DNA of 64,000 nt, from contig NW_027361675.1 in NCBI RefSeq assembly GCF_039654945.1, positions 34,844,001 to 34,908,000 of the forward strand, given 5' to 3'. The DNA comes from Dendrobates tinctorius. Taxonomy: Eukaryota. Of this stretch, positions 3,361-53,455 are shown one piece after another. Each line of letters starts with the position of its first letter. Position 1 is the stretch's first letter. The position numbers were made by a program, and so were the translations under genes. Below the pieces are notes generated by a model, which was not told where the DNA came from, made no database searches, and saw only the letters and a list, made by a program, of their open reading frames with translations.

Positions 3361-3755
3361 AGCCCCCGCTACACACTGCGATATTGCTAGCAATATCGCT
3401 GTAAAGTCACCGATTTTGTGACGTTGCTGCGATATTGCTAGCGATATCGCTGCATGTGATACTTACCTCCGACCCGCTCCCCCGCTGCTCATCGTTGGTC
3501 GCGCGATAACTCCCTGGACCATTCCTCGTCGGCCACTTCCTGCTGCGCTTCCTGTGGCGCTGACGAGCGAGGCGTGGAGCCGGGCAGGAGAACGCAGGAT
3601 CGCCGCGTCTGACAGGTAAGTAGCGACCCCCGACCCCTGCTATGTCGCTGGTGAGATCTGCCTGTGTGGCAGCTCACTAGCGACCACTTAGCGATGCACC
3701 AGCGATCCATATCGTTGTCGGGATCGCTGGTGCATCGCTAAGTGTAACGGTACCC
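3361..3755. mobile_element. PIF/Harbinger-type MITE (family A), TAA TSD
   Basis: TAA at 3358-60 and 3756-58; imperfect TIRs AGCCCCCGCTACAC / GTGTAACGGTACCC; internal GCGATATCGC palindromes; related copies at 23622, 43578 and 53073. Confidence 0.85.
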
Positions 3756-4322
3756 TAACATTGAATATCATGCACTGTGTTCACACAGATAATCTAAAGT
3801 GTAGGTGTCTTCAATGTTCAAATCCCATAAGTAATACTAATTCTCTGAATACATGATATTATAAAGTATTGTACATTCATTTCTGTTGATACTGTAAAAG
3901 AATATTTAATTGTATTAACGAAACAAAATATTTTCTTCTTATTACAAATATGTTACGAATATGTACTCATTCCAATTCTCCAAATGGTAAGGAGGTATTG
4001 CCTTGCAACATGGTAAACGTTGTTTAAGAATTTCCATTTCTCTTTTTTGTCGGTCAAATCGTAGAACATACATACAATATCCATTTACATTTCACAATTT
4101 TTTGCAAACTGAACAAGAACTGTTTTGCTCACATAAATGATTTCCTGCATTATGAACGAGCTTTTCTGGATGCATCGTTCGGTCGCTCAACCCATTCACA
4201 TTACACAATCATCATGAACAATGGGCAGAAGATACCATTGGAATCTGACAGATTATCAGCCAGTGTAAGTGGGCCTTAAGTTTAGGAGTCCAGTGAGCAG
4301 AGTCACTTAATGAGTGACAGAC

Positions 4323-5211
4323 TGTTAGGATTGGCGGAATACACCAAATAAATTATAAACAGGTGCGTTCGCAACCCGGGGTCCACTGTGTGGTGATGGA
4401 GAAACTGCAGCTAGCACAATGGCGGAGCAAGGCTGCGAGAAAACACTTAAAGCACACTGAGTTAAAAGTCACTCAGTGTGCACAAAGCGCAAAGTAACAA
4501 GCTTTGTTACACCACAGAGCGGTACTATGAAGCAAAGCAGAAAGGACTATACCCTGTTAGACTGCACAGGCGTATAGAAAAATACTATTGGGGTCCCTAT
4601 AACTTAACCCCCCAGGGAAAACTAAGCTGGTGGTTGACCCTGCTCTGACACACGGTGTGCTTTAGCATGCGCGCCTGAGGATGCCCGATGCACATGCTAA
4701 GTTTAGGTGGGAGTTCCCACCCTACACTGCCTGTCTAGACCAACACTCGCAGTGCTATTAGCGACACACGTGTACACAGGCTGGTAAAGTAGCCAACACA
4801 CCAAACACACATGATACTAGTGCACCGACATGTGCCATTGAGAGCTTTTTATACCTTGCTCAAGTCCAGACAGACAGGAACTTGCCTGTGGACCAATCTG
4901 AAGCTGCCCCATCACCAGAGCACCTGATGTCCGAACACCAATGGGAAGGCACCGTATCATGGACATGCTCAGTAGGGTGAAATCTGGACCTGGGCTCCAG
5001 AGCACAGCGCAGCACGTGTAAACTAGTAGTCACCATAGGCTTAGCTGGAGGGCCATCAGTAACTACACATGCAACATGAACCTGGGCAAGGCGCTGCGAC
5101 CAAAGTCTGTGCTGATCAGTCATCTCAGCAGCCGAGCCTGAATGGGAGACCACAGCACCAGACAAGGCTTGAGATCTATCCCGTTCAGCGGGAGAATCCC
5201 AACGCCTAACA
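4323..5211. mobile_element. Solo LTR, 889 bp
   Basis: TGTTAGG...CCTAACA termini; 5-bp TSD CAGAC at 4318-22 and 5212-16. Confidence 0.8.
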
Positions 5212-5691: not shown

Positions 5692-8312
5692 TATAAATTT
5701 TATTGAAAATTTTCACAACAAAGGGTATCAACAAAGAAAGCATTATCCATGTCACAGGTGCCATGTCACATTTCAAGACTTAATGCGATAATAATATCCT
5801 GAATATTTACTTCCAGCATTTCAAACAGAGAATGAATGAAAAATTTAAGGATTGTCCTTACAATACTTCCTTCCCTATATAACAGTTCCAGGAACAGCAT
5901 CAAAAATAAAGACGGCTTCAAGCACAAAAAGGAGAGGGGTAAGAGGGGAATTGGGGGGGAATTCTCCCAACCTGCCTCTTTTAACCAAACCAAATGCTTA
6001 TCTCACTCCTCTCCCGACAAGCAGATGCCTTTCACCAGTTAAAGGGAAACTGTCACCTTCTATTTCAGCTATGATCTGCAGCCACTACCTTCCAGGGCTT
6101 ATCTACAGTATTCTGTAATGCTACAGATAAGCCCCCGATCTAACCTGAAAGAGAAGAAAAACAAGTTTTATTATACTCACCCAGGGTGGTCCGGTCCGAT
6201 GGGCATCACAGGTCTGCTGCCTCCCATCTTCATACGATGTTGTCATCTTCCTTGCTTCGTGTCATAGTTCCTGCGCAGGCGTACTGATCTGCACTGTTGA
6301 AGGCAGAGCCAAGTACTGCAGTGCGCAGGTGCTGGGAAAGGTCAGAGAGGCCCAGTGCCTGTGCACTGCAGTACTTAGATAAGCCCTCAACTGGGAAGAT
6401 CAGTACGCCTGCACAGGAGCCACGACACAAAGCAAGGAAGATGACAACATCGTATGAAGATGGGAGGAGCTGGACACGGACCTGCGATGACCATTGGACC
6501 AGACCGCCCCCGGGTGAGTATAATAAAACTTGTTTTTCTTCTCTTTCAGGTTAGATCGGGGGCTTATCTATAGCATTCTATAATGCTGTAGATAAGCCCC
6601 AAAAGGCAGTGGCCACAGCTCATAGTTGAAAAAGTAGGTGATAGGTTCCCTTTAATTTAGGCGCATTAGTATGCCAACCGGAAGGGTCCTAAACTATTCT
6701 TAAGGCTCTCCATTAGGTACCATTTCGTTGAGGAAAAAGGTTCAATTATTTTCCGTCTCTCATCAGTGCTACAAAATTTGCCAATAAATTGATTCAATTT
6801 TTAAAAAAAATTACCTGCTTGCGTCTCTTTATTTGTAAGTGCATCTCCTTGTTCAACCATCATATAGTGATGCAGTTGGGATATCAAATCTGATAGTAGT
6901 GGGTTAGAAGGACTGAGCCACTGCTTGAGAATCAATTTTCCAGCAAAAATCAATATAGTGTGTAAAAGTTTTGGAGGGCCCTCCTCTCCACAATCTCCAA
7001 TCTCCAGTTCTCCCCAAGAGTGTAGGATTGCCATTGACAGATATAGCGGTTTTACATTATTCCATAATTTAGCTATCAGCCCTGAGACTGAATCCCAGAA
7101 AGAGGCCACAGAATGACACGACCACAGTCCATACTGTACATCATGTCAGAGTTGGGTAGTTGGCAACTAGGGCATGCGGTAAGTCTATCAGAACTGGGAT
7201 ATGATTTGTAGATGTTAAAGGCATATGTAGTTCTGTGCATGATTTTGAATTGAGTCTTTCTCCAGGTCTCATTTATTATGTGTATCCGGAAAAAGAGACA
7301 ACCCTTTCTAATCACAGAGGGAGCTTCAACGTCATCCAATTGTAACCTCCAATATTTATAAAAAGTATCTGGATGAGGGTCTAGTAAATGTGGCTTCATT
7401 ATAGAGTAGATTGTGGAGATCGAAGAGGTCACTGTTGGGTGTTTAAGCAAGTCGTCCAGCACATTATGTCTCGATTCGAAATTAACATTATGCAGGTTTG
7501 ACATAATCGAACGTTTGATCTGTTCGTACTGAAAGGAATGGGAGGGCTGTAGTTGATATTTTTCAAGTACTTCAGAGCATGTTAACCATCTAGCCTCCGT
7601 CGAGTGAAGGAGGTGCGAGATATTAAAAATATTCTTCCATCGCCAGGCGATAAACAGTCTATTCTCTATTCCCTGCGGGAATTCTGGATTAGCCCATAAT
7701 GGTATTTAGAAATTCTAAATGAAAGGCTACATTTTTCCTCACCGCCTTCCATGTTGAGATCGTGTCCCTGAATAAAACTGATAGTTTTAAAAAAGGAGGA
7801 ACGGAAGAGAGATGTGAGTGCAAAATAGCAGTCAGATCTATGGGATGAGCGAAGTCTGCCTCCAGAGCCGTATCTGTATATGAGTGTCTTTTATGTAGCC
7901 AATCAATGTTTTAACGCATGTTGCAAGCCAAATTATAATTCCTAACGCTGGGGAAATTTATGCCTCCTTCTTTTGAGGTCATTAATTTCAACAAGCCAAT
8001 TGTGGGATGATTATTCCTCCGGACAAATTGACTAAATTGACTATTAAAAGAGTTGATATCAGAGTGTTTGAGCAAGAGGGGTATTATTTGAAGAAGATAC
8101 ATCAGTTTGGTCATACTAATCATCTTAACAAGGTGGGCCCTTCCCATGAGTAATAATGGGAGATCCTGCCACGTTTTCTTTTGGTTGGAGATTTTGGTCG
8201 GGGGGGGGGGGTAATTTAAAGTATATATAAACGAAGGTGTTCTACCAATTTTAATACCTAGATAAGTGATATAACATGAAACAATGGTAATGCCTCCCAG
8301 AGGGATTTTTAA
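5692..8312 (-). mobile_element. 5'-truncated, degenerate L1-clade LINE (ORF2 C-terminus plus 3' UTR)
   Basis: ORF fragments 7911-8315 (YLGIKI...GRAHLVKM), 7076-7504 (FKIMHR...CPSC) and 6801-7109 resemble L1 ORF2. AATAAA near 5700 on minus. Flanked by a ~19-bp near-duplicate CACAGG(G/A)ACATTTTTTTAA at 5673-5691 and 8313-8331. Confidence 0.9.
6043..6651. mobile_element. Palindromic TTAA-target MITE (T2/Kolobok-like) inside the L1 3' UTR
   Basis: TTAA at 6039-42 and 6652-55; TIR AGGGAAACTGTCACC / GGTGATAGGTTCCCT; long internal inverted arms. Confidence 0.85.
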
Positions 8313-8735: not shown

Positions 8736-8879
<144 letters not shown>

Positions 8880-10718: not shown

Positions 10719-10914
10719 GGCCGGGGTCACACTTGGGAGTGCAATGCGAGAAACTCGCGTGAGTCTCTCACCTCAATACCCGGCACTGCCGCCGGCGGTT
10801 CGGACCGGAGAGTTCAGCTGCATACAAAGACATGCAGCCACACACTCCGGTCACGAGTGCCGGCGGCAGTGCTGGGTATTGAAGCGAGAGACTCTTGTAA
10901 GTGTGACGCCGGCC
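10719..10914. mobile_element. Short palindromic Harbinger-type MITE
   Basis: TIR GGCCGGGGTCACACTT / AAGTGTGACGCCGGCC; flanks TTA and TTT. Confidence 0.8.
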
Positions 10915-19361: not shown

Positions 19362-19508
19362 CGACCTTCGTGCACCCCGGCAACTCTGAAAACAGGTCCC
19401 TGTTCCTCTGGAGAAACTCCCAGCACTGCTGTTTGTAGGCCTTCGATAGTGTCTCCGCTATAGTAACCGCTCCAACCTCACCTTCTGGGTTGCCCAGCAA
19501 GCACGGAG

Positions 19509-23988: not shown

Positions 23989-24887
23989 TTAGACAGCTGT
24001 CGGCCTAATGATCCCACAGCTACAGTATCTCCACCTAATCCATGATCGGGAACTCTCGACTCAAATAAGACCTATTTGGTAGCAGCTTAAAACCAAGAAA
24101 ACAAAAGGATTGAATGTTTCAAATCAAATGAGCTGGAACCTTCTCTTCCCAGGCAGATGATGTCAGGGAATTGTCAGGATGCCCTATACACATTAGGCTG
24201 CTGCCTGATGTGTATGAGGCTTTAAGTTTGTGTATCTATTATTAATGCATGCATGTATGAATTAAGTGTTTGTTCATAAGTACACTTTGGTCAATAGTAT
24301 GTAGATACCTGCCCATCACACCTATACAAGCTTGTTGGATATCTCAATCTTAGGGAATAAAACAGATTTGGAATCTCATCTGCAACATAGCATACAGAAA
24401 ACTTCCTACACCCTTCCCATAAGGCTTTCTACATCATTTTAAAGCGTATCTGTTCGAATATGTGCCCATTCAACCAGAGAAAAACATTTGTGTGATCACG
24501 CACTGATAGTTGGACGAGAGTGTCTGACTCGTAATTTGCATTGTGATACATCCTCGGTATTTAATGGGATTAAACAAGTTGGGCCTTGAACAATATTTAT
24601 TGCAACCCACTGTGAGTGCTAAATGTATGATTGCTACAGATGATGAGTAAAGAGATCTGTGTTCCCCATTTGAATTGATTGGTAGTCATGCATATAATCT
24701 ACCATTCCTTTTATTGCCTGTGGGACAGACCAAAAAAACACCCAGCTATCTCCAACAGTCCCATAGAATGAACCATTCATTTGTCGTACAAAGTTTCTTG
24801 CTTTTGTCTTATTCAGGATCAATACTGCATTACAACAAACTAGACTGGTTGGATGTATGGCTTTTTTTTCAAGTTTTCTAACTATTA

Positions 24888-25612
24888 TTGGGGTTGTTCA
24901 CTTCTAGAGCAACTCCTTCTCAATCTGAATGTTTGCCCCTGTTAAAATAATTGAAGAGAGCAATGATGGGGATTTGCCCACCAATAAAAATATTTGTATG
25001 GATCTCACCAAAGAGAATGTGATATATAGCAAAAAGTGAGAATTAAAATATAACTTTTAATATAGCCATTAAAATGTATCAACAATAAAGTGCCACCTCT
25101 AAAGTGAAAAAGGAAGGGGGTTTGCTCCTGGTCGGAGTTAATTAATTGAATATCAAATGAAGGCAAACACCTCCCCCAGGATAGAAAAGAGTCTTCCTGC
25201 AGTAGCCAAGGCAGAATCTATGGAAATACAAAATTTACTATCACGAGGCATAAAAGCTTGTACTCCAGTGAATTGTGCCTAATCACAAAAAACATGGCTG
25301 TTAAAATAAAAAGTATACTCACCTCATGTGCCGACGCTGTTCCAGTGGTGTCGACACTCGCTCTTATGAAGCTCACGCGAGGTTGTTGAGTCATGTGAGC
25401 CCTGCACCCAATCAGTGCTGGAAGCAAATACAGTGAAGCCAGCATTGATTGGCCGCAGGCCTCCTGTGACGTAACAAAGTCACGTTAGCCACGGGCATGC
25501 GAGATCCGACATAGCTGGAACGGCACTGGAGGTGAGTATAGGTATTTTTATTTTAATGAGGCCAAACATGCAGATTCGGAAGGGATTATCCTAGTGGTGG
25601 ACAAACCCATTA
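24888..25612. mobile_element. Old T2-like MITE with an AT-rich insertion
   Basis: GGGGTTGTTCACT ... GGTGGACAAACCCATTAA ends; palindromic core 25300-25560. Confidence 0.55.
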
Positions 25613-25745
25613 ATATTATATTAACATGACATTCATTTATAATATACAAAAAAATAATAGAAATTGGAAAATAATAAACAACAATTTAGCAACTGTAAAA
25701 ATAAAACAAATTTCCATAGATTATTTTGTCTTCACAGTAAAGCTA

Positions 25746-32300: not shown

Positions 32301-34945
32301 AAGCGAGGGCTAAGGTGTCCTGCTCACCGACGGTTTGAAAGAAGCCGTATAGGGACGTCAGGATAGACCAGGGCACAGCCTCAGGAGAGTGCAGGAGGTG
32401 TCCATTTTACCCGTTCCCAATCACAGGGCCCACCATTGTAATTTTATCCCCGGTGCTCACTTGTTTGTTTTTCGTTTAGTGACCGACCGTTTACTGGGTC
32501 CTGTCACACAGGGCCAGTCACTTCGTGACACCGATGTTTTGGCATATCGTACTTGGACTGAAAGTATAGCACCTGCCCTTTTTATCTATTTAAAAAAGGT
32601 GCAAAAACAATGATGAATCACGGGCAAAGTTTTTTTGCTTCGCAATAAAAAGTAGTAAAGAGGCTTCAATGTCCATATGTTGCTACTGATTTATTCATGC
32701 ATGTATCTAATTGTAGGATTTACTTTCATATAGCATGCATCTTCTCACCAAAAGGCAGCAACAGCATGTATACATCATAACCAAAGAGGTTTCTAAATAG
32801 ATCACTGAGGGTATACTTTAAGTTTTATTATTCTGAATGATAATGTGTCCTTATCATAACGGTGAAAGAAGAAAATATTGAAAAAAAAATTAAAACTTCC
32901 AAAAGAACAAAGCAGCTCTACAACCAAGGATATGTTTAGATGGGGGAAATGTAGGACAGAGATTAAATATCTCTATGATCTGACTGTAGATGATTAGATA
33001 TGCCCCAGGATGTTTTTTGAGAACTACTGCGCTTATTAAAAATTATAGTATCTTTCTGGATATACCACTTTGCCTGTAATAAAGTGACATGTTATGATAA
33101 ACTTTTGCGGCTTGAGCGCTTAAAATTCTCTTGTGAAGAAGGATATTAGGTCAGTCTAGTTTCTAGGGTTTTTTGGTTTTGTTTTTCCCTTGTCTGAGAA
33201 CACAATTACATCCTACATATCAGCAGTTTTCCTGCAGAGACGTAGGATTCCCAGGCTTTTGCTTAGGAAGTCCTTGAAGAATATAGAATTAAATGTTCTT
33301 TGGTAAAGATTGCACTTCCTCTCATATGCCTGCAGCAATCTTCTATATCCCACATAGGCGTCCCATCAAGGCAACAATATTGAGGAGTAGTTGTTCACAT
33401 TCATAAAGGGAATTTGCGCCATTAAATCCTAGCACTGCCAGCTCCACTGTACTCAGGTGTTTTCTTTAGGAAAGCTCTTACTTATTGTTTTACACAACAA
33501 ATAACATCTTCTGCTCCAAGGAGCAGACGTGCAGAATCTCCCTATGCTCTGGAACATCTTGTCATATTAATCAATGCAAGAAAGGACATTTTAAAAGACT
33601 GGTCTTAGAATAGATGCAATAAAAGTTAACAATTCATGTTGCAATGTGTGATCACAGAGGAATGCATTGGCTATAGTGTGACTCAAAAGAATGGCTATGC
33701 AATTTAGATGGTAGAGGACAAAAAAAGAGAATTTATAAATATGGTTTATAAAAAAATGAACATACAATGTAAAAAATAATGTCTAGTATACTACATGCTA
33801 TCTAACGAAATCTATCACATGGGTTAGGGTCTGCTTACACAGACCGACCGGCAGTATGATACAACCTAAAATTGGTAACCTCCGATTTACCATTCGGCAG
33901 TCGTTTGAATGCCTGCTTACATAAGCAGACCAAAGTAAACGAGCTCAGTGCGCGTTTGCTGGCATTGTACTTAGAGTTGCATCATTCTGTTTAAAATATC
34001 ATCTCACCTAATTATCGAGCGTTTTGCTTGTTCATTGGATGATTGGCAGCCTGTTTACACAGCAAGATAGCTGAAATACTAGCTTTTTTATCAATGCTCA
34101 TTCACAATTATTTTGCAGTATTTTAATCATGACAAGCTTGTTACTGCGATATAGGTAATAAATACAAATGGAAAAATATATATGAAAAAAGTTATATACA
34201 GCTCACTCTCTGATAGCTTCAGAAGAAAAAGAAAAAACTTGGAATTCCAAACACCAAAGCTCCTAAAAAAGACCATCTTTGATCAAGGTATGGTGCAGGG
34301 TGTGTGGATAACACACCAGACTGGCTTCCAGGTAATAAAGGATGAAGAGGTCCGAAAGGACTGGACTCCAGCACCGGAGGGAAAAAATAATATAAAAAAA
34401 TTGCTTTTAACTATTAAGAGCTACCGTATATACTCACGTATAAGCCGAGATATGCAGCCCATTTTTTGGGGCTGAAAGTCCCCCTTTCAGCTTGTACGCG
34501 AGTCATATACCAGGGAGTGAGCGGGGGAGGAGGAGTGGAGGTGTCGGATCATATTCATGCCTTTAATGAGCAGTACCATGTGACCGCTCAAGGAAGGAAG
34601 ACCATGGGAGAAGCGGGGGGGGGGCTGCAGAGACAGTGCCAGGAGGTGGTAAGCATATGCTATATTCACCTGTCCCCGCTCCAATGCTGCTCGCCGCGTC
34701 CTCTGTCAATGACGTTCAGGCAGCAGAGGGCGCGATGATGTAGTTAGTGTGCGCCGCGCCCTCTGCTGCCTGAACAGTCACTGACATAGGATGCGGCAGA
34801 CAGCGGTGAGCAGCAGTGGACCGGAGACAGGTGAATATCTTAGGTGCTGGGGCCCTGAGCCAGTGGGGACACCGGCACCTGGCCCCCAGCTACGGAGAGA
34901 TGAGTATGTCATTTTTTTTATTTGCAGCAGCAGCGGCAGCAGCGT

Positions 34946-36700: not shown

Positions 36701-37379
36701 GTAATCTATGGAACATCTTATGGGGCAGCATATGGGGGCATAATCTATGGAGTATCTTATGGAGCAGCATATGGGGCATAATCTATGGAGCATCTTATGG
36801 GGCCATAACCTTTATGGAGCAGCATATGGTGCATATATATCTATGGGGCCATTATTAACCTTTGTGCAACATTATATGGGGTGTATTTTGTATGGAGCAT
36901 CTTATGGGGCCATCATGAACTGTATGGAGCTTTATATGGGGTTCCTGATTCAATATGGATATTCAAAAACATTTAACCTACTGATGTCTCAACTAATTTT
37001 ACTTTTATTGGTATCTATTTTTTTTTAAATTTACCATTAGCTGCTGCATTTTCCACCCTAGACTTATACGCGAGCCCAATAAGTTTTCCCAGTTTCTCGT
37101 GGCAAAATTAGGGGGGTTGGCTTATACACGCGTCGGCTTATACACAAGTATATACGGTAATTAGAAAGCTGGCTCTTATGTGGATGATCTTTTACTTCTA
37201 TCTCTTCTATTTCACTAGCAAACTTACAGAGATTGTCCACTACTAGGCAACCCTTGCTTAATCAATTCAGCACTCAAAATAAAAACATACTATACTCGCA
37301 CAACTATTCCCTGAGATTAACGTGACTTGCGTCAAATGCAGTCTAAAGTGTCCGATGTATGGCAGAAGCTCATCAATAT

Positions 37380-37858: not shown

Positions 37859-38400
37859 TTTACCATCAAGAAGGACGTCCGCAAATAAACAAAATAGTAA
37901 AAGCTGCAGCTGACAAGCAGCTTCTCATTGGCTGCAGCCTGCACGTGTTGTAACGAGTCACATCACTCTATTGGAACAGGTGCGCCAACATCGCTGGAGC
38001 GGCGTCGCTGCAGAAGGTGAGTATAGATTGTTATAATTTACATGGGTGCCTCATTTTATTAAGAAGGGATTGTCCAGTAGTGGATACCCCCTTTAATTCT
38101 CAAATTCAACACCTACTTGGAACTGTCTATTGAGCACATAGGCCATTAATGCTAAAATTGTTGACTACTGATATCCCTGACAAACCTCAAGACACCTACC
38201 AACTACCTTGCAACTGCTTTGTTAAGATGTATCCTGCCTCAGGTATTCTTCCACTGTCATCAAATTATTAAAAATAGACTACCAGGAGTACATTTGCATA
38301 CCCTAAATCATTAAACATCCAGCAGTACCAAAATTTTAATTAATATTTGCATTTAAATAGTAGACTAATACATTTATTTCAAGAACATCGCATTTACTTA

Positions 38401-41060: not shown

Positions 41061-42309
41061 TGTCACGATTATGTTGTCCGTTATCCCGGGGCCAAGGGCT
41101 CCTTCCCTGTCACTAATGCTAGGGGTGCCCTAGCTATCCCTGTTCACCAGATTTCTTCTAATGGTGAAGACGGCAGAGACATGTACCTTGCTTAGCTCCT
41201 GAATCTGCCCTCAGTCTGTTCCCTTCCACCGCCCAGGGAAGAGGGGAGTAGTAGTGTATGGCAATACACCAACCAGATTAACAAGGTAATAAGAACAGGG
41301 ATAAAGGAAAATATCAATCATACAAAAATGCACTCGCAAACACTGGGGAGACACTGGGAAGTGACAGACGGGAAAAACCAAAGTAGGAGACAGAGTCTTA
41401 GATAAATCCATGAAACACCTTCCCAAACAACACACTACCAACTCGTGAACCATGCAGCAATGAAGCTAACGCTGGCAATACTGACTTGCCAGAGTTCAAT
41501 TTATATAGGAGAGGGAAGTGGCCAACAGTGAACAGATGAGAGTCTAAGGGCACCGTCACACATAGCGACTCACCAGCGATCCCGGCAACGATATCAACTT
41601 GTCAGGATCTCTGGTGAGTCGCTACATGATCGCTGGTGAGCTGTCAAACAGACAGCTTCAACAGCGATCTGCACAGCGACGCCCAGCGTCGCTGTGTACT
41701 TTAGTTACCAGCACGCTGATGCAGGGAGCTGTTAACTAAGGTACACATCGGGTTTCTAAGGGGCGTGTGTCACTTAGAAACCCGATGTGAACCTTGGTTA
41801 CCAGCTCCCTGCATCAGCGCGCTGGTAACTAAGGTACATATCGGGTTTCTAGGCACAGCGCGCCCCCTTAGAAACCCGATGTGTACCTTAGTTACCAGCT
41901 CCTGCTCGCTGGTTGCTGGTCTCCCGCCTGTCACACGCAGCGATGCATGCTGACCAGCGGGAGACCAGCGACCCCAAAAATGTCCAGGGCATTCCATCAA
42001 CGATCAGCGATACTGGCAGGGGGGCCGGTCGCTGATCGCTGTCACACACAGCGATCTCGCTGGTGAGATCGCTGTTGCGTCACATAACTAGTGACTCAGC
42101 AGCGATCTCGCTAGCGAGATCGCTATGTGTGACGGGACCCTAAAGCAGGTAAGCTTCCACAAGTTCTCAACTGAGTAGATTAACCCCTGCACTGCTATAA
42201 GAAACCTGCACCGTTTAATATGAAGGTGAAGTGCTTCTAGTGAGTGCAGGAGTAGGAGAAATCAGACAGCGCAGTATTCAGGCTCCTCTGTCGTGGCAAC
42301 CCTGTGACA
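41061..42309. mobile_element. Solo LTR inserted in the Tc1 TIR
   Basis: TGTCAC...GTGACA termini; 5-bp TSD AGAGA at 41056-60 and 42310-14; removing it restores the TIR seen near 56570-56600. Confidence 0.85.
41548..42140. mobile_element. Harbinger-type MITE inside the solo LTR
   Basis: TIR GGGCACCGTCACACATAGCGA / TCGCTATGTGTGACGGGACCC; TAA TSD; duplicated internal hairpins. Confidence 0.88.
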
Positions 42310-43577
42310 AGAGATCATTATATCTTCAACTTGCTTAACTGTTAACAATAACAGCAATTTTGACCAGGCATGCCACTGTATATATAACCTTTGAAATGCA
42401 CTGTGTTTGCTACAATATTCAAAAAAATATATCAAAGAGAGGTATTCTACTAAATTAATAATGAGCTTTTTGTAGGATAGGTCATCAATATTAGAGTGGT
42501 GTGGGGCTGACATCTGACACCATCATCAATCAGTCATTATTACGTCTTACGTTACAGTGGACAGATGCAAACAGGTTATGGAGAGAAACACCACCAATCC
42601 GTCACATTGTTTAGTGGCTGCTGTGGGGTGCTGCAGAACCTATTCAACTAACCAATTGCTTTTTGACTATGAACAGTGTTCCCATCTGACAGTATTTATG
42701 GGTGCTAAGCTAACACCTGATCAGTGGGGGTGCTTATCTGATTCAAAGGTTAGGTTGTCAATATAAATGTAGGGGAAAACCCTTTCAACCTGATGAGATA
42801 TCGTAAAGTGATAAATCTCATCCCCTCACAATGGTGCAGTTAACAATTCACTAACATCATCACTAGAGCGTGAAGCACAAAGTAACCGGTCAAGCAAAAA
42901 TGACTACCAGTGACAATATGCTATAAAAGGAATACAACATTGTAATTTAAAAGATTTATGTTACATTGATGTGATCAAATTGTTTAAAAAGCCTAATCAT
43001 AAAGGTGTTTCCCAATACTTAATTACAATTTTTTTACAACATTCTGGCTGCATTACTTATTAGAGAGAATATGTCAACAGGTTTTGTTATGTAATCCGAG
43101 AGCAGCATGGTTATAGGGGCAAAGATCTAGTCAAACTGATCTGTGTAAACCTGCCCCACCACTGATTAGAAGCTTTCTGTCACAATGTATAGTGTACACA
43201 AAAAGCCGCCAGCGGTTATACACAGCTCAGCATTCATAGCCCTTCTACATCTGCAAGAGAAATCTGTGATTGTATTTAAAAAAAAGTGTAATTCTGGCGT
43301 TTTCATTTTTTTTTCTCCTTATGCTATTAAACAATAGGATTACTTCATTTTATATTTTGATAGATAGGACTTTAACAAACAAAGCTATGCCAAACATGTG
43401 TATTTTCTAACAGTTTTAGTTTACTGGGGCAAAAGGGGGGTGATTCTAACTTGTGGTTTTTTTTTTTCTCATTTTTACTGTATTTGTTAATCCCCTTAAG
43501 GGACTTTAAGTTGCGATTGCCTGATCGTTGGTGTTAAACATAGCAGGTCTTCAGCTCTGCCATGAATAGCAGTGTTA

Positions 43578-43984
43578 GGGTACCGTTACACCTAGCGATG
43601 CACCAGTGATCCTGACCAGCGATATGACGCTGTCAGGATCGCTGGTGCTTCGCTAGGTGGTCGCTAGTGAGCTGCCACACAGGCAGATCTCACCAGCGAC
43701 ATCGCAGGGGTTGGGGATCGCTACTTACCTGTCAGACGCGGCGATCCTGCGTCCTCCCGCCTGGCTCCACGCGCTACTCGTCGGCGCCACAGGAAGCCCC
43801 AGCAGGAAGTGGCCGACGAGGAATGGTCCAGCAGCTTCTCGCACGACCAGCGATAACCAGCGGGGGAGCCGGTCGGAGGTAAGTATCACATGCAGCGATA
43901 TCGCTAGCAATATCGCTGTAACGTCACAAAATCGGTGACTTTACAGCGATATTGCTAGCGATATCGCAGTGTGTAACGGAGGCT
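43578..43984. mobile_element. Harbinger-type MITE (family A; inverted relative to the 3361 copy)
   Basis: TTA at 43575-77 and 43985-87; closely similar to the reverse complement of 3361-3755. Confidence 0.88.
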
Positions 43985-43987
43985 TTA

Positions 43988-44790
43988 GGCGTCTGGTTTC
44001 TGCGTCTGCTCTGCAGGAATCCAGAGCCTCACATTCTGCGGTCTCCTGCTGTCTTTCTACTGCAGAGAAGATTACTTTGCAGCAGACCACTCCAGAGACT
44101 AAGTTCCCCTGTGCTCCTACTGGGCATGCTCACGAGGCGATCTCCCATTGGAGATCGGGAGTCATGTGCCCAGGTCCTGCTCTAGATCTCATTGGTCCAT
44201 CTCGGAGATCTGGAAGGTCCCGCACGGCTATAAAAAGCGCACATGACCGTTCGGCCATGCGCTAGTATAGACTTTTCAAGCTAAATGTGTGAATGGTGAC
44301 GGATGTATGACTCTGGTGACGGACTCATTTGAAACCCCTTCCCTCTGATATTATGCATGTGGATAGGGAATTAGTGCAGCAGTCAGTGGCAAGCCTTAGG
44401 CCACTGTGCACACTGCACCTCTACTCTAGCGTCCGACATTGTGCCTGCTTCCTGCCCTACGCCGCGCTGCAGTTGCAGCCCTCCTTGGAGTCCGCAGTAG
44501 CGACGCCACACACACGGTAGGTCTAGACGGACGCAGCTCCTCTGCCTTGGGTCCTGCTCCTGTGACCAGATACCATGTGTGCATTTCCCTGTGGTCTGTG
44601 CCACTAACAGGCTCAGCATTTTCGTATGTTTAAGTTGCGGCGCCTCTGTGTGTGAACAGAGCCCGCTTTACGCACTTCGGGTGATGTCTAACCCATGCGC
44701 ATTATACCGCCATATTGCTCGTCTGTCATTACCTAGCAGCGGTTTATCACCTACTGCATGGTGGACCCCGAGCGGCGAACGCACTTTATT
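43988..44790. mobile_element. LTR-like repeat (start TGTTA at 43573, split by the MITE)
   Basis: GC-rich, with TATAAAA near 44229; right end and TSD not resolved. Confidence 0.4.
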
Positions 44791-45346
44791 ATTTATTAGA
44801 AATCACGAGCTCCAATGAATGCTGGCCACAGGCTGGTGTTCACAGAAGGATCATAATAACAGGTATTGGGGTCATCAGCAGACCTCTGGCTGTCATGACA
44901 AACCATCGGTTCCCTTACGATCACCTGACAGGTGCACAGATGGTCATAGAAAATATCATGAAGATAGAAGAAGTGAAGACAGTAATAATTTTTTTAAAAA
45001 GTGCAAATTTTATTGGTAATCAATTTAAAACAAAAGACAGGACAAATGGGTCTCCAACATGAAGGGGATAAGGATAACCAGCAAAGAAAAAAAGGAATTT
45101 TATAATTCTCCATAAGGTGCAAAGTGCATATATTAGCAAAAGACAAAGCTTGATATTATTATTAAACATCTAGAGTCCATAGTGCCTATAAACCCCTACC
45201 AAAGAAATATATCCTATGGCCTATACTCCAACAGCAATTGCAATATTATTGCTAAAAATTTGCCAAACAAAGTGGAACAGCACTACAGAGATATGGCCTA
45301 TTTTTTTGGGGTGGGGGAAGGGAGGGCTATAGGAAAAACACCAGGG

Positions 45347-45997
45347 AGATTAGTACAAATCAATAAACAGAATCATCTGTCCTGTGTGTGCATACCTAGT
45401 TTATGATTCTCTCTCAGAAGAGTGAAGAGAATTAATGGAACAGCAGAAAAATATTCTATAGAGCGTTAAATATAAAAAGCTGGGTTCAGGATTTTACCTG
45501 TTGCTGGCCGCTAAAACACAGGACAAGTGTGGTGAAACTGGATGCTGGTAGGCTTTTCCCCACCACCCGACAGCGCTGTTTCACAATAGTTGCTTCTTCC
45601 AGGGTCGTTTAACAGGTAGTGGTGTTCACAGAGTATTTGTAGTTACCGTCTGTTCATAAGCGCGGTCATGTGACCGGAATTGTGTATAGGACCTGCGGGT
45701 GAATTTTACATCCGGCTACCGCCGGATATGAAAAGGACCTGTGAGTAGCGTGTGGCTAGTCTAAGAAATGGCACTGTCGAGCGGCGGGGAAAAGCCTAAC
45801 AGCATCCAGTCTCACCACACTTGTCCTGTGTTCTAGCGGCCAGCAACAGGTAAAATCCTGAACTCAACTTTTTATATATGACGCTCTATAGAATATTTTT
45901 CTGCTGTGCCATGAATTCTCTTCACTCTTCTGAGAAAGAATCATAAACTAGGTATACACACACAGGACAGATGATTCTGTATATTGATTTATACTAA
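45347..45997. mobile_element. Penelope-like inverted repeat
   Basis: ~45347-45570 is inverted relative to ~45775-45997; hammerhead-like motif at the inner edge. Confidence 0.65.
45565..45605 (-). ncRNA. Variant minimal hammerhead-like motif
   Basis: ACCC-UGGAAGA-A-GCAA(CUA)UUGU-GAAA-CAGCGCUG-UC-GGGU; palindromic stem III and GUC triplet; core differs from CUGANGA. Confidence 0.5.
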
Positions 45998-46002
45998 TAA
46001 AT

Positions 46003-46685
46003 CATGTGCCCACCATGCGAAAAGTAAGCAGAACATTTGCGGATGGTACCCACGGTCTGGAGGAGAGGAGATTCTCCTCCAGGCTGTGGGTACCATATCC
46101 CTGTAAAAAATAGAATTAAAATAAAAAAATTGTCATTCTCACATTCCAATGTCCCTCGCAGTGTCACCAGGCCTCAGCGATGCTCCAGGCAGGTTCCGTT
46201 CCCAGTGACGCATTGCAACAATGACCTTTGATGACGTCGCGGTCTCGCGAGACCGCGACGTCATCAAAGGTCATTGTCGCAATGCATTACTGGGAGCAGG
46301 ACCTGCCGGGAGCATCGCGATGATCGAGAACGCTGCGCGGGACGCCGGAAGATGAGAAAAACCACATTTTTATTTTTTATTAATTATTTTTAACTTTATA
46401 TCTTTTTAATACTTATGCTGCATAGGCAGCATCAATAGTACAAAGTTGGTCACACTAGTAAAAACACTGTTTGACGAGTGTGACCAACCTGTCAATCAGT
46501 TTTCCAAGCGATGCTACAGATCGCTTGGAAAACGCTAGCATTCTGCAAGCTAATTATGCTTGCAAATTGCTAGTTTTTCCGCAGGAAAAAGGCGGGAATT
46601 AAAATGCGGTTTTCTTGCGTATTTCCAGCGGAATGGAATTCCCGTGGAAATTTCCGCGGAAATTCCGCAACATGTGCACATAGCC
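46003..46685. mobile_element. Harbinger-type non-autonomous element with a perfect 60-bp central palindrome (left end approximate)
   Basis: Right end TGTGCACATAGCC-TAA; palindrome at 46218-46277. Confidence 0.65.
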
Positions 46686-48587: not shown

Positions 48588-48602
48588 AGGAGAAAATTAT
48601 TA

Positions 48603-51304
48603 TCTAATATATAAAGCTCAAAGTGTGTATGTATGTATGTATGTATGTGTGTGTATGTCCGGGATAGGCATCCGCACCGTCGCAGCTACAGCCGCAAAAT
48701 TTGGCACAGTCACACGTCTGGACCCCGAGAGAGTCCTAAGCTATGTTGTGAGGCGAAATTTTAACCCCGCACGTTCCAATTCACCAAACAAATTTGCCCC
48801 ATCTACATACTGGGGAAAAAGTGTGTGCGCGTCAAGCCACGCCCCTCATTATGATGTCATAATGCCCCTATTTGCATACGGGGGAAACTGTGTGCGTATC
48901 AAGCCCCGCCCCTCATTATTATGTCACAATGGTTGCCATGGCGACGCTGATGTCATCATAGGATGCAAGCCCTGCCGCCGCTCATTATGATGTCATAATG
49001 GTTGACTATGGGATGGAGGATGTGTGATGGGTATATGGGCACTGGACTATGGGATGGAGGATGTGTGTTGGGTATATGGGCACTGGACTATGGGATGGAG
49101 GATATGTTTGACGGGTTTATGGGCACGGGACTATGGGATGGCGGATATGTATATGGGCACAGGACTATGGGATGGAGGATGTGTGATAGGTATATGGGCA
49201 CTTGACTATGGGATGGAGGATATGTTTGGCGGGTTTATGGGCATGGGACTATGGGATGGCGGATATGTATATGGGCACGGGACTATGGGATGGAGGATGA
49301 GTGATGGGTATATTGGCACTGGACTATGGGATGGAGGATACATATGACGGGTATATGGGCACTGGACTATGGGATGGAGGATTTGTTTGACGGGTATATG
49401 GGCACGAGACTATGGGATGTAGGATATGTATGATGGGTATATGGGCATGGGACTATGAGATGAAGGATGTGTGATGGGTATATGGGCACGGGACTATGAG
49501 ATGAAGGATGTGTGATGGGTATATGGGCACGGGACTGTGGGATGGAGGATATGTATGACAGGTATATGGGCACGGGCCTATGGGATGGTGGATATGTATG
49601 ACGGGTATATGGGCAAGGGCCTATGGGATGGTGGATATGATGGGTATATGGGCACGGGACTATGGGATGGAGGATGTGTGATGGGTATATGGGCACTGGA
49701 CTATGGGATGGAAGATATATATGACGGGTATATGGGCACTGAACTATGAGATGGAGGATATGTATGACGGGTATATGGGCACTGGACTATGGGATGGCAG
49801 ATATGTATGATGGGTATATGCTCACGGGACTATGGGATGGAGGATATGCATGATGGGTATATGGGCATGGGACTATGAGATGAAGGATGTGTGATGGGTA
49901 TATGGGCACGGAACTATGGGATGGCGGATATGTATGATGGGTATATGGGCACGGGACTATGGGATGGAGGATATGCATGATGGGTATATGGGCATGGGAC
50001 TATGGGATGGAGGATATGTATGATGGGTATATGGGCATGGGACTATGGGATGGAGGATATGTATGATGGGTATATGGGCACGGGACTATGGGATGGAGGA
50101 TATGCATGATGGGTATATGGGCATGGGACTATGAGATGAAGGATGTGTGATGGGTATATGGGCATGGAACTATGGGATGGCAGATATGTATGATGGGTAT
50201 ATGGGCACGGGGCTATGGGATGGAGGATATGCATGATGGGTATATGGGCATGGGACTATGGGATGGAGGATATGTATGATGGGTATATGGGCATGGGACT
50301 ATGGGATGGAGGATACGTATGATGGGTATATGGGCACGGGACTATGGGATGGAGGATATGTATGATGGGTATATGGGCATGGGACTATGGGATGGAGGAT
50401 ATGTATGAAGGGTATATGGGCACGGGCCTCTGGGATGGAGGATATGTGATGGGTATATGGGCACTGGACTATGGGATGGCGGATATGTATATGGGCACGG
50501 GACTATGGGATGGAGGATATGTATGACCGGTATATGGGCACAGGCCTATGGGATGGAGGATGTGTGAAGGGGATATATGGGCACGGGACTATGGGATGGC
50601 GGATATGTATATGGGCACTCGACTATGGGATGGCGAATATGTATGATGGGTATATGGGCATGGGACTATGGGATGGAGGATGTGTGATGGGTATATGGGC
50701 ATGGGACTATGGGATGGAGGCTGTGTGATGGGTATATGGGCACTCGACTATGGGATGATGGGATGGAGGATATGTATGATGGGTATATGGGCACGGGACT
50801 ATGGAATGGCGGATATGTATGATGGGTATATGGGCACGGGACTATGAGATGGAGGATATGTATGATGGGTACATGGGCATGGGACTATGAGATGAAGGAT
50901 GTGTGATGGATATATGGACACTCGACTATGGGATGGCGAATATGTATGATGGGTATATGGGCATGGGACTATGGGATGGAGGATTTGTGATGGGTATATG
51001 GGCATCGGACTATGGGATGGAGGATGTGTGATGGGTATATGGGCACGGGCCTATGGGATGGAGGATATGTATGATGGGTATATGGGCACGGGCCTATGGG
51101 ATGGAGGATGTGTGATGGGTATATAGGCACGGGCCTATGGGATGGAGGATATGTATGATGGGTATATGGGCACGGGCCTATGGGATGGTGGATATGTATG
51201 ATGGGTATATGGGCACGGGACTATGGGATGGAGGATAATTATAATTTGTTATAACTAACCACAGTTAGTTACTATGACCGGGCAGCGCCAGGCTCTTCAG
51301 CTAG
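48603..51304 (+). mobile_element. Non-autonomous Helitron carrying a minisatellite
   Basis: 5' TCTAATATATAAAGC followed by (GTAT)n; 3' imperfect GC hairpin CCGGGCAGCGCCAGG then CTAG; A|T target with no TSD. Confidence 0.85.
49003..51236 (+). repeat. G-rich minisatellite, 34/41/43-bp units (GACTATGGGATGGAGGATATGTATGATGGGTATATGGGCACGG)
   Basis: About 2.2 kb of tandem repeats. Confidence 0.97.
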
Positions 51305-53072
51305 TTTTAAATAAAAATCTCATTTTTCGAACCTTGCCAATGTCTGGATTAGATTTTAAATTCATTTGGAAACTCATTTCATTAATAAAAGTATGAGTTT
51401 TCATAGAAAACATAAAATTGTCTGGGTGACCCCAAACTTTTGAACAGTAGTGTATACGATACTGATCGCCTATCCTTAGGGCTCGTGCAGATGCCTGTAT
51501 TTTGCATTTTTGGTCCGAGTGCGATCCAACAAAATATCGGATTGCACTTAGACCAATATTAATTTATGGGGCTTTGCACAACTCTGATTTTTATTCGGAT
51601 TGAGCCATTCTGAGGAAAAAAATCATAGCATGCCCCAGTTGGAATCGATTGTGGTATCACACTCGGCCATGCAAGTCAATGAGTCTGAGTAAAACATTGG
51701 AGTGCACTTGGATTACATGTGAATACAGCAAATTTTCATGGACAGACAAAATGGAGACATTTTTTTTTCCGTCTTCTCCTCATCCAAATATCAGATCACT
51801 CAATGCTCACACTCTGATCAGTGTGATTTGCATAATCGACCCAATTCTCTCAGATGAGATAAAATACTTTCTTGTGCCCCCAGCCTTGCAATAGGTCATC
51901 AATATTAAATCGGTGGTAGTCCGACAATCGGTTTCCATTACCAGCTGTAGTCAGTGAATGGAGCCTGAACAGCACAACTTTGTTCACTTTGTAGTGACCA
52001 TTGCTGAGAATTACAGCTCAGCTCTAATAAAAGTGAATAGGAGCTGAGCTGCAGTTAACAGGATCATTGCCTAGTCTGGATACAATTGTACTCACAGATG
52101 GACACAAGACTAACCACATACTGGGTTTCAGTCCTGGCCTGTAAACAGCTGATATCAAACTAATATCTTTAAAATTATGAGGAACAGAAATATTAGAAAC
52201 TTGTACAACTTTATGCACTGATTTATTTAAATAAAACACAAAAAACGTTCATACATTTTTAAGTCTTTGTAAAATATTATTGTCATCTAAATCTTGCTCT
52301 TGTCAAATTGATTAAAAGAATTCTACAGTACATAATGTAAAAAATATCATACGTATCATTTAACCCAATCCCATAAACATCTCATTTGTATCATTTGTAC
52401 TAGTACAGTATTGGCGCCCATTCTCACTTGTTTTTTTAACTAAGCAGCAATGGAGTTTGCTGGAGTTTTGTGTTAGATCAATCAATGTTTTCCCTGAACC
52501 CTGACCCTTGGGTGCAATAAGGGCCTTCTAATTAATTATTAAAGTTTTCTAACAGCCAATGGTTCGTGTGTCTGGTTTCACTTTACTCTCATTACCTGCT
52601 CTCTGTAGAATGGTAACAGACAGCATGTAATTATAAAATGGCCATCTAGCTGCTACCCTGGAGATCCCTGCCAAGGCAATGGTTTGGAGACACGAAGGTT
52701 TTCACTCCTACATATAAAAAACACTTCTAATATGGTATTTTAACCCCCTCATTAGTTTATTTCCTGCAAATATAAACCAGTAATAAATCAATAGCAGAAT
52801 GATACATGTGTGATGGTGCATAAATTGTGAAATATAAAGGAATAAATAAATAAATAAATTCAGAGGTTCCAGGTGCTAACTGGCACTGCTCCTAGACTAG
52901 GCCCGTTACAACCTTCAAAGGTGCATAAATTGCCTGGTGTCTGCACCATTAGCATCAAAGGTACATTTGCCCTATGTACTGTATATCATGTATGTTGCTG
53001 TATATGCAGCTGTAATGAGCAGGTGAAGTGTAAATTAACTTAAAAATTGTTAAAATTAATGGTACAGATTTA

Positions 53073-53455
53073 AGGGGGTTTTACACATAGCGATATCGCA
53101 AGCAATATCGCTAAAACGTCACCGGTTTTGTGACGTTATAGAGATATTGCTAGCGATATCGCTATGTGTGATACTTACCTCCGACCGGCTCCCCCGCTGT
53201 CCATCGGTGATAGCGCGAGATTGGGCGCCTCCATCTCTCGTCGTCTGCTTCCTGCTGTGTGAGACGAGCGACGCTGGACGCGGGCGGGAGGACGTCAGGA
53301 TCGCTGTGTGTGAAAGGGGAGTATCGTGCGCTGCGTCGTTGTGAGATCTTTCTGTGTGAAAGCTCACTAGCAATCATTTAGCGATGCACCAGCGATCTTG
53401 ACCGGGTCGGATCGCTGGTCGGATCGTTGGTGCATCGCTAAATGTAAAAGGGCCT
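53073..53455. mobile_element. Harbinger-type MITE (family A-related)
   Basis: TTA at 53070-72 and 53456-58; similar to the reverse complement of 23622-23988. Confidence 0.85.

Follow-up and report, generated by a model that had tools for sequence, protein, structure and literature searches.

Do MITEs in a poison-frog genome carry pairs of outward-facing splice donors as part of their design, and what might such donors do? The question was raised by a preliminary description of 64,000 nucleotides of Dendrobates tinctorius DNA (contig NW_027361675.1, positions 34,844,001 to 34,908,000; hereafter the window, which contains no N). According to this description, MITEs of three target-site classes share paired 5' splice-site motifs that point away from a GC- and CpG-rich core and are near-perfect complements of U1.

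Enrichment and orientation of the donor words

A word search of the window located each of the motifs quoted in the preliminary description to within one base of its reported position: TACTTACCT at 3460, 23764, 43722, and 53172; AGGTAAGTA at 3614, 23881, and 43877; TATACTCACC at 6172 and 25314; GGTGAGTATA at 6513, 25531, and 38016; TATTCACCTG at 34663; and CAGGTGAATA at 34828. An additional occurrence of TATTCACCTG, absent from the original list, was found at 58068. Words matching AGGTRAGTAT with at most one mismatch were present 23 times in the window versus 8.07 ± 2.68 expected, a count reached in none of 100 shuffles, and 15 of the 23 were located inside flagged elements. Sites offering at least nine contiguous U1 pairs were also in excess (8 observed versus 1.16 expected), seven of the eight belonging to a single family, designated A. 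Since copies of an element are not independent events, counts were also collapsed to families. This left approximately 13 motif events in the window versus 8 expected, i.e. approximately five independent events above a background of eight.

The significance of outward- and inward-facing donors was determined for each element by dinucleotide shuffles performed separately on each half. For outward sites, p values were 0.009 and 0.0025 in family A, 0.0035 to 0.0125 in element B2, and 0.04 and 0.17 in element B1. Outward donors of elements C, C2, D, and E were not significant by the same shuffles, and the best inward-facing site was not significant in any element tested. All strong sites in the elements of the window faced outward and none faced inward, indicating that the claimed orientation of the donors is specific. 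Seven palindromic elements of the window (named G, H, I8, and I17) displayed no donor signal.

Scored with a 5' splice-site matrix that is our own approximation, the sites reached 11.6 to 12.6 bits in A, 11.7 to 12.1 in B2, 8.8 to 10.9 in B1, and 8.7 in C. Each site of family A forms ten contiguous pairs with the 5' end of U1, and B2 forms 9 of 11. Pairing reaches +7A and +8T in A (on the side of hairpin 1), B1, and B2. This match exceeds the usual splice-site consensus and fits U1 pairing itself. A U1 snRNA gene or pseudogene fragment was considered as the source of ATACTTACCT and rejected, as Rfam returned neither U1 nor any other family in the window. Together, these results indicate that the paired motifs are genuine family-level features, beyond chance, of two unrelated high-copy MITE lineages, family A and the T2/Kolobok-type elements B1 and B2; the enrichment over shuffled controls is restricted to these two.

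Element families and the position of their donors

Family A is a PIF/Harbinger-type (Tourist-like) MITE present in approximately 10^5 copy-equivalents. The four copies in the window, and F, a sister family, are the following.

3361..3755, plus strand: A copy 1, TAA duplications at 3358-3360 and 3756-3758
3459..3469, minus strand: outward donor of copy 1 on the side of hairpin 1, GAGGTAAGTAT, ten contiguous U1 pairs, 11.6 bits
3613..3623, plus strand: outward donor of copy 1 on the side of hairpin 2, CAGGTAAGTAG, ten contiguous U1 pairs, 12.6 bits
23622..23988, minus strand: A copy 2, TTA duplications at 23619-23621 and 23989-23991, core shortened by a deletion of about 39 bp
23763-23773 (minus) and 23880-23890 (plus): donors of copy 2
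43578..43984, minus strand: A copy 3, TTA duplications at 43575-43577 and 43985-43987
43721-43731 (minus) and 43876-43886 (plus): donors of copy 3
53073..53455, plus strand: A copy 4, TTA duplications at 53070-53072 and 53456-53458
53171-53181 (minus): intact donor of copy 4
53315-53324: hairpin-2 side donor of copy 4, mutated to AGGGGAGTAT
41548..42140, minus strand: F, TAA/TAA duplications, with terminal repeat, hairpins, and core edge as in A

The 3-bp TWA duplication was found at all four copies of A (TAA/TAA once and TTA/TTA three times), and the ends are inverted repeats of approximately 14 to 25 bp. Hairpin arm 1 is followed by a CpG-rich core of 145 bp and then by hairpin arms 3 and 2. 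The core is flanked by two separate 10-base U1-complementary sites, both outward. It is not palindromic (z of about 0), in agreement with the caveat in the preliminary description that the cores of this family lack symmetry, and its two donor sites are therefore independent of palindromy. They are only about 150 bp apart, which leaves tight room for two first exons plus a promoter. Arms and core were similar in CpG retention (80 to 84% and 75%, respectively). The only ORF of family A (93 aa, spanning the core) had no homologue in a protein search, and the window contains no autonomous Harbinger. The exact 19-base arm word had eight matches in metagenome contigs, which were bacterial chance matches, none with the element.

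The preliminary description proposed that the cassette had been selected convergently. Conservation provides no support for this claim: the donors of the four A copies showed no significant excess of conservation over neighboring bases. They diverged by 0% and 5.6%, versus 10% for the arms, and 10% and 35% of the 9-base windows in the four copies were equally well kept.

Family F carries CAGCGATCAG at the position where A carries TACTTACCTC. Homology between F and A extends across the hairpin-core boundary, but F has no donor. F is nevertheless present in tens of thousands of copy-equivalents, indicating that the donor is unnecessary for spread. Since F keeps the core edge of A but carries an unrelated 10-mer in place of the donor, donor and core would not have been acquired together, unless F lost the donor. 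The homology across the boundary also led us to reject the possibility that the core of A is a nested, TA-flanked mini-element. F contains a nested 93-bp palindromic module (at 41693-41902) and GTGAGT words in both orientations, which originate from its hairpin stems.

The second lineage and the remaining elements are listed below.

6039..6655, unstranded: B1, palindromic MITE with TTAAAGGGAA ends
6173-6182 (minus) and 6512-6521 (plus): outward GGGTGAGTAT of B1
24885..25613, unstranded: B2, TTAA-type palindromic MITE, left arm enlarged by an insertion of about 350 bp
25315-25325 (minus) and 25529-25539 (plus): outward GAGGTGAGTAT of B2
37860..38096, plus strand: B2p, right half of a diverged B2-like copy, end CCCTTTAA
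38014-38024: outward AAGGTGAGTAT of B2p
46116..46383, unstranded: E, TTAA-bounded palindrome centered on TCTCGCGAGA
57883..58333, unstranded: C2, T2-type TTAA MITE with the terminal repeat of B1
34662..34838, unstranded: C, 177-bp palindrome, both ends of which are the weak motif CAGGTGAAT
45353..45994, unstranded: D, palindromic MITE with probable TA duplications, low copy number
45490 (minus) and 45847 (plus): outward pair CAGGTAAAA of D, weak and non-significant

On the basis of their TTAA target and terminal AGGRR, B1, B2, B2p, and C2 are classified as T2-MITE/Kolobok-type non-autonomous elements. TTAA followed by AGGG was found at the ends of B1, B2, and B2p. The terminal words are TTAAAGGGAA in B1 and C2 and TTAAAGGGGG in B2p; those of B2 are mutated (TTAT.. 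and ..CCCATTAA). No Kolobok gene was found within the window. Both arms of B1 and B2 carry GGTGAGTATA exactly at the step from the GC-rich core to the AT-rich arm, and in these elements the pairing of the donors follows from palindromic symmetry. Alignment of the B2 group (diverged halves, 68% mean identity) identified AGGTGAGTATA as the longest invariant run (11 columns), the CCAAT-box core being among the next longest. The core of B2 contains two CCAAT boxes and one TGACGTAA site. E, whose arms show a relationship to the inner arms of B2, has a degenerate donor-like GTGAGA. As regards transposon coding sequences, the Tc1 ORF of the window had no database record of its own and has its best long-contig relative in an unrelated genome of 35% GC without these MITE families, and the closest relatives of the integrase are in distant frogs.

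The TWA and TTAA target-site classes were confirmed. The third, TA class was not supported. It had been proposed on the basis of C, a putative mobile element that is present in one copy in the window and has flanks permitting several readings of the duplication. Its motif, CAGGTGAAT, has a poor base at +5 (8.7 bits versus 11 to 12.6) and is also present in the TTAA element C2 at 58067-58077 (minus strand), where the partner is mutated. D fits a TA target, but its donor-like pair is weak.

Composition of the cores and origin of the paired sites

The cores were as rich in GC and CpG as initially described (GC content of 0.51 to 0.69; observed-to-expected CpG ratio of 0.54 to 1.36 versus 0.48 for the whole window). 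The CpG ratio was 1.02 to 1.36 in A, 0.82 to 0.90 in B2 and B2p, 1.17 in E, and only 0.54 in B1. At 110 to 350 bp, the cores are short in comparison to classical CpG islands. The motif is located at the core-arm boundary in every case, and in the T2-type elements, whose arms have a GC content of 0.19 to 0.40, it marks a step in composition. ETS, CCAAT, CRE, YY1-like, Sp1-like, and TCTCGCGAGA motifs were 5 to 10 times denser in the cores than in the rest of the window, a promoter-like content, with motifs characteristic of housekeeping promoters, according to a count based on consensus words only and on motifs chosen post hoc. No sequence similarity was found between the cores of different families. 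This excludes a single captured core as the source of all families, an outcome that the preliminary description had named as counting against its proposal. A and B1 have an ORF that opens at a start codon and runs to the donor, but a stop in B2 led us to drop this as a general feature.

Transcript evidence was sought in contigs from four runs, one of DNA and three whose RNA type was unknown or a guess. Among the matches listed, no junction or loose end was found at the GT of a MITE donor. Loose ends fell at element ends and within the variable core, including in the DNA run. Those at 43749 and 43837 were also present in the DNA run and correspond to differences between core subfamilies, and the joints 43745>43837 and 43746>43848 lack GT..AG and resemble core deletions.

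Promoter-proximal 5' splice sites are known to enhance initiation, and U1 to suppress premature cleavage and termination. The likeliest working model, which we hold tentatively, is that the elements may contain a compact, CpG-island-like divergent promoter with promoter-proximal U1 sites. RNA polymerase II would initiate inside the core in either direction, and the promoter-proximal 5' splice site would recruit U1, which would boost initiation and shield the outward transcript from early termination. U1-protected outward transcription is proposed to keep the copy in open, poorly methylated chromatin, where it would be accessible to transposase. Splicing to downstream host exons would be a by-product. 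The model is favored by the strength and outward orientation of the sites, their location at the edges of promoter-like cores, the non-palindromic core of A, and the invariant block of B2. Against it stand the high copy number of the donor-free F, the ordinary conservation of the donors in the four A copies, the lack of junctions at the GTs among the matches listed, the close spacing of the A donors, and the post hoc choice of the core motifs. Transcription of the cores, binding of U1, and a benefit to the element are what we infer from the DNA. It seems unlikely that this model applies in its fullest form, in which a portable two-way 'activation tag' would have arisen independently in two unrelated lineages of DNA transposons in a 6-Gb frog genome. 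Such a tag would be a miniature CpG-island promoter with outward transcripts licensed by near-perfect U1 sites, present in approximately 10^5 copies; it would seed alternative first exons genome-wide and would reflect selection on the elements for U1 recruitment.

The combination of promoter motifs, high CpG content, and a donor at the GC step is also the look of a real first exon. The cores might accordingly be inert relics of promoter/first-exon/first-intron junctions, with promoter motifs, CpG richness, and donors inherited together. The junctions would derive either from genes of the parental autonomous transposons, which were internally deleted and then duplicated in fold-back form, or from host genes whose 5' ends were captured. 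In a deletion derivative that retains the 5' portion of a gene, the donor would point toward the opposite terminus, and plant Pack-MULEs are known to capture GC-rich 5' gene ends. This origin appears less probable than the promoter model, although it comes next to it. The unrelated 10-mer found in F beside the core edge of A argues against it, unless F lost the donor. Ten contiguous U1 pairs are rare in ordinary splice sites, and A has two such sites. On either side of the A core, the donor lies at most a few bases from the arm, an unlikely outcome for random capture boundaries. The absence from the window of autonomous Harbinger and Kolobok elements for comparison also counts against this origin. 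Only marginally less credible, and likewise improbable, is a combination of chance, symmetry, and ascertainment, in which a short GT[AG]AGT-type word that arose in a few among many MITE families was doubled by palindromy, multiplied by copy number, and noticed by a reader attentive to splice sites. The small excess of family-collapsed events, the confinement of p values of about 0.01 to A and B2, the higher values for B1, and the non-significance of C, C2, D, and E are in agreement with this explanation, as are the silence of the seven palindromic elements and the hairpin origin of the GTGAGT words of F. However, chance would have had to produce two independent matches in the non-palindromic core of A (joint p of about 2e-5 before +7 and +8 are considered), an 11-base invariant block in B2, a donor at the core-arm boundary every time, and no strong inward-facing site.

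The preliminary description also suggested a device that keeps intronic insertions tolerable in either orientation. In such a device, host transcription would read through the element, and the U1 site on the sense strand of the exit arm would silence cryptic poly(A) signals of the AT-rich entry arm, rendering intronic copies less harmful in both orientations and thereby increasing copy number. Suppression of polyadenylation is known to require very strong U1 pairing, and the symmetry of the elements would protect both orientations. The arrangement of B2, B2p, and E fits this proposal: AATAAA or ATTAAA is present on the inward-reading strand of the arms, 12 to 38 nt outside the donor position, and in a read-through transcript these hexamers would precede the sense-strand U1 site by approximately 230 to 260 nt. 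In contrast, both arms of family A, in which the donors are clearest, are free of poly(A) hexamers, and in B1 an AATAAA is located on the outward strand, 8 nt past each GT. A U1-poly(A) arrangement consistent across families was thus not found. Since F spreads without the site and the promoter-like content of the cores is left unexplained, we consider insertion tolerance to be distinctly improbable. Least probable by far is a signal acting at the DNA level, i.e. a word that is recognized by a transposase or by a DNA-binding protein of the host and only resembles a splice donor. In the B2/E group, the word is 13 to 25 nt from the inner TTAA, within reach of the terminal repeat, but in A and B1 it is 100 to 136 nt from the termini. 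It is also shared by two superfamilies with different transposases, and it matches the 5' end of U1 over 9 to 10 bases.

If the sites are used as proposed in the promoter model, the elements would provide natural bidirectional promoter-plus-donor cassettes at approximately one per 20 to 60 kb of a giant genome, and would supply alternative first exons and chimeric transcripts on a large scale. They would be an example of a spliceosome-recruiting signal that transposons have evolved to aid their own persistence, and would offer a direct test bed for the role of promoter-proximal U1 binding in setting transcript fate and for the escape of CpG-rich inserts from methylation. If, instead, they are relics or chance matches, frog introns would contain perfect donor motifs derived from repeats by the tens of thousands, which annotators should not take for exon ends.

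Relationship to known systems

The Xenopus T2-MITE is a presumed non-autonomous Kolobok with a TTAA target and terminal AGGRR, and its T2-C subfamily has been reported to be enriched upstream of genes (PMC6004289). The TTAA elements of the window resemble it by their target, by AGGRR directly after it, by long inverted arms and a palindromic build, and by the existence of many subfamilies with differing interiors (PMC6004289). Outward donor motifs and CpG-rich, promoter-like cores are not mentioned in the T2-MITE papers examined; the host here is a different, distant frog, and the likeness described is one of target, ends, and build. For a Harbinger MITE of Xenopus, the published role is that of a liver enhancer rather than of a promoter with donors (PMC12676858). 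Family A shares with Tourist-like and Harbinger-N MITEs the 3-bp TWA duplication (in all four copies), short terminal inverted repeats, a non-coding sequence, and a very high copy number, and is set apart by an asymmetric 145-bp CpG core between two 10-base U1-complementary sites. No description of outward splice donors in MITEs was found in a literature search.

Transposon-borne promoters making chimeric transcripts include the L1 antisense promoter and LTR promoters with a splice donor, and a promoter plus splice donor has been engineered into activation-tag transposons (Sleeping Beauty, T2/Onc design). The common feature is a promoter, putative in the present case, followed by an outward donor with the potential for splicing into downstream host exons. 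Those retroelements and laboratory constructs are one-directional, whereas the MITEs described here are natural DNA-transposon derivatives of 0.4 to 0.7 kb with a candidate site on both sides. The major splice donor of HIV-1 suppresses the poly(A) site of the 5' LTR, and divergent promoters of host genes show an enrichment of U1 sites confined to the sense side. The MITEs resemble the HIV-1 5' LTR and the U1-poly(A) axis by strong U1 sites near a putative start region, with possible silencing of nearby poly(A) signals; unlike host promoters, they carry the site on both sides, and their poly(A) hexamers are inconsistently arranged. Finally, plant Pack-MULE-type elements are DNA transposons that capture GC-rich 5' gene ends, and the MITEs similarly have a GC-rich insert, reminiscent of a promoter and first exon, between transposon ends. 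They differ from Pack-MULEs in that no host or transposon source gene was found and in that F argues against capture of a block including the donor.

Mobile elements and their donor motifs

The 64-kb window contains no N, and its GC content of 41.9%, with CpG at 0.48 of expectation, is vertebrate-like. It is crowded by mobile DNA: Tc1/mariner is present in several copies, 17-22 kb holds the pol region of an LTR retroelement, and there are two satellite arrays and many small inverted-repeat elements. No host gene was recognised within the 64 kb. An Rfam search of the whole window returned zero families, excluding a U1 gene fragment as the source of the motifs. The Tc1/mariner element at 694-1920 is bounded by terminal repeats that are perfect over 32 bp, and its transposase ORF of 346 aa is intact; the nearest database proteins (Logan/ENA contigs) are 93-95% identical. 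The next-best matches are in fishes (Sinocyclocheilus, Cynoglossus; 88-94%), a similarity far too high for frog-fish divergence, making this element a candidate for horizontal transfer. The Ty3/Gypsy-type pol remnants (RNase H and integrase; 17000-22000, minus strand) have their best protein relatives, at ~70% identity, in distant frogs (Leptobrachium, Pelobates). A 2.2-kb G-rich satellite at 49004-51237 (43/127-bp unit, ~53 copies) accounts for the GC skew of ~+0.4 at 48-52 kb. The elements relevant to the donors (GT motifs complementary to U1) are the following.

3361-3755 and 53073-53455: family A copies 1 and 4, in one shared orientation
23622-23988 and 43578-43984: family A copies 2 and 3, in the opposite orientation
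41548-42140: sister family F, with TAA duplications and A-like ends and hairpins
6039-6655 and 57883-58333: T2-type elements B1 and C2, with termini TTAAAGGGAA
24885-25613: T2-type element B2
37860-38096: B2p, a diverged B2-like right half with a T2-type end
34662-34838: C, a single-copy palindrome
45353-45994 and 46116-46383: palindromic elements D and E

Each of the four family A copies is bracketed by a 3-bp TAA or TTA duplication, which is the mark of PIF/Harbinger-type MITEs. The layout is asymmetric, with an 87-bp hairpin arm on one side of a ~145-bp GC-rich core and two different hairpins on the other. Read outward, the core is flanked by GAGGTAAGTAT on the hairpin-1 side and by CAGGTAAGTAG on the other, each able to pair with the 5' end of U1 over 10 contiguous bases. 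The donors are intact at seven of the eight sites, the altered one, in copy 4, being AGGGGAGTAT.

In B1 and B2, outward GGTGAGTATA is present on both arms, a pairing that results from element symmetry. The left arm of B2 is interrupted at 24952-25300 by ~350 bp with the direct repeat TGTTAAAATAA on either side, and this segment thus has the appearance of a transposon that inserted later and duplicated its target. The preliminary description had proposed three target-site classes. The TWA and TTAA classes were borne out; the TA class represented by C was not, since this palindrome is single-copy in the window with ambiguous flanks, the motif forming both its ends is weak (GTGAAT), and its word recurs in the TTAA element C2. 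The flanks of D fit a TA duplication, and its pair, CAGGTAAAA, is not significant. A ~85-bp unclassified hairpin at 34428-34512 carries GTGAGTATA outward in its left stem (34430, minus strand), a further repeat context for this 9-mer. A satellite with a 39/77-bp unit (34938-36121 and 36702-36846) begins 100 bp beyond C.

Departure of the motifs from chance

All motifs quoted in the preliminary description were found, at most one base from the positions assigned to them. With one mismatch allowed, AGGTRAGTAT matched 23 times in the window against 8.07 ± 2.68 expected, a count reached in 0 of 100 shuffles; 15 matches lay in the flagged elements, and the other 8 equal the expectation. According to an approximate self-made matrix, 10 of the 12 best splice-site scores on both strands were in A or B2 copies. 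Since copies within a family are not independent, each element half was compared separately with 2000 dinucleotide shuffles.

Table. Outward donor sites against dinucleotide shuffles
A, two sites: p 0.009 and 0.0025
B2: p 0.0125 / 0.0035
B2p: p 0.0055
B1: p 0.04 / 0.17
C: p 0.075, for a site other than its quoted motif
C2: p 0.14-0.17
D: p 0.23-0.30
E: p 0.11-0.21

The best inward-facing site was significant in no element tested (minimum p 0.09). By the same shuffles, the palindromic elements G, H, I8, and I17 gave no outward signal, and a fifth one (10746-10909) had one outward site at p = 0.017. As the preliminary description states, the A cores lack symmetry: without the motifs, their self-complementarity does not exceed that of shuffles (z = -0.9 and 0.0). 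The two A sites thus count as separate events, and their joint probability is about 2e-5.

When both halves of B2 were aligned with B2p (mean column identity 68%), the longest stretch without variation, 11 columns, was AGGTGAGTATA, and the next-longest runs include the CCAAT core. With ~36% invariant columns, such a run is unlikely (order 0.002, a rough estimate); anchoring of the alignment inflates this result. Among the four A copies, divergence from the consensus was 0% and 5.6% for the donors, 10% for the arms, and 14.6% for the core; 9-base windows that match the two donors in conservation make up 10% and 35% of the total, and four copies give this comparison no power.

Cores, sister family, and transcript comparison

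The motifs coincide with a composition step between cores (GC 0.51-0.69, CpG observed/expected 0.54-1.36) and, in T2-type elements, D, and E, arms with a GC of 0.19-0.40 and nearly no CpG. Housekeeping-promoter-type words, counted post hoc in GC-rich sequence, are 5-10 times denser in cores than elsewhere in the window. In the A core there are two ETS words of the CAGGAAG type and, ~55 nt upstream of the donor on the hairpin-1 side, an invariant YY1-like AATGG/ATGG; the B2 and B2p cores have CCAAT boxes and TGACGT, the B1 core an NRF1-like word and AAGATGG, and the E core TCTCGCGAGA. The preliminary description had named cores tracing to one recently captured sequence as a finding that would refute it. 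This origin was excluded, as no core sequence is common across families, save an 18-base word in B1 and C2, whose ends are the same.

Homology between F and A spans the hairpin-1/core boundary (CGACCGGC..., then TATCGCTGATCG), which excludes the A core as a nested TA-flanked mini-element. At the donor position, F has CAGCGATCAG and A has TACTTACCTC. Summed contig depth, relative to ~9 for single-copy DNA, suggests tens of thousands of copy-equivalents for F and ~10^5 for A. F thus has an A-like core edge without the donor and is yet high-copy, indicating that A gained the donor as a discrete feature or F lost it, that donor and core did not arrive as one block, and that the donor is not required for amplification. 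Nested in the middle of F (41693-41902), a 93-bp palindromic module is repeated in tandem (2.2 copies). CAGGTAAGC, at 42146-42154 (11.5 bits), lies 3 bases beyond the right target duplication of F and was taken as background.

The run search yielded Logan contigs alone, from four DNA runs of the species and several small runs whose RNA type was unknown or guessed. Contigs from one DNA run and three of the others, which cannot reveal transcription starts, were aligned to 41500-46400 (4901 bases) at 80% likeness. Among the matches listed, no joint or loose end fell at donors 43731 and 43879. Loose ends occurred at element ends and at core positions 43749 and 43837, in the DNA run as well; the latter two match the core variant of A copy 4. 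Two joints within the A core in run X16 were without GT..AG. An unclassified repeat at 44000-44800, which the DNA run puts at ~10^4 copy-equivalents, is 10-30 times rarer relative to family A in runs X6 and X16, which are therefore not plain shotgun DNA.

Candidate explanations and known systems

Together, donors and promoter-like cores are compatible with a working divergent promoter or with a relic of first exons. We tentatively favour the former as a possible explanation of the outward pairs: the core would be a working divergent promoter, and the donors would be promoter-proximal U1 sites on the outward transcripts. Descent from real first exons appears rather doubtful. It would account for the co-occurrence of donors with promoter-like cores, but the F comparison leans against it, the U1 pairing is unusually long, and the donors abut the arms tightly. 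A combination of chance, symmetry, and ascertainment is unlikely as a general account. It suffices for B1, C, C2, D, and E, but pure chance is unlikely for A and B2: the A sites form a pair, orientation is strictly outward, the motifs lie at the core-arm boundary, the U1 match extends to +7/+8, and B2 holds its invariant block. It is improbable that the donors render insertions tolerable with respect to poly(A) signals: B2, B2p, and E do have AATAAA/ATTAAA on the inward strand 12-38 nt outside the donor, but A has no hexamer and that of B1 is on the outward strand. A binding site acting at the DNA level seems very improbable, and the rest of the probability falls to something else.

Our literature search found no account of outward splice donors in MITEs. 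In Xenopus, MITEs have been discussed as enhancers (PMC12676858) or for their reported enrichment upstream of genes (PMC6004289). The ends of B1, C2, B2, and B2p match the published definition of T2-MITEs, which are presumed Kolobok derivatives (PMC6004289), and the satellite beside C recalls the Xenopus tandem arrays carried by T2-MITEs (Xmix/Xstir; PMC6004289). From their sequence, the outward-donor MITEs are classed as a variant, of putative function, among known transposon-borne promoter-and-donor modules.
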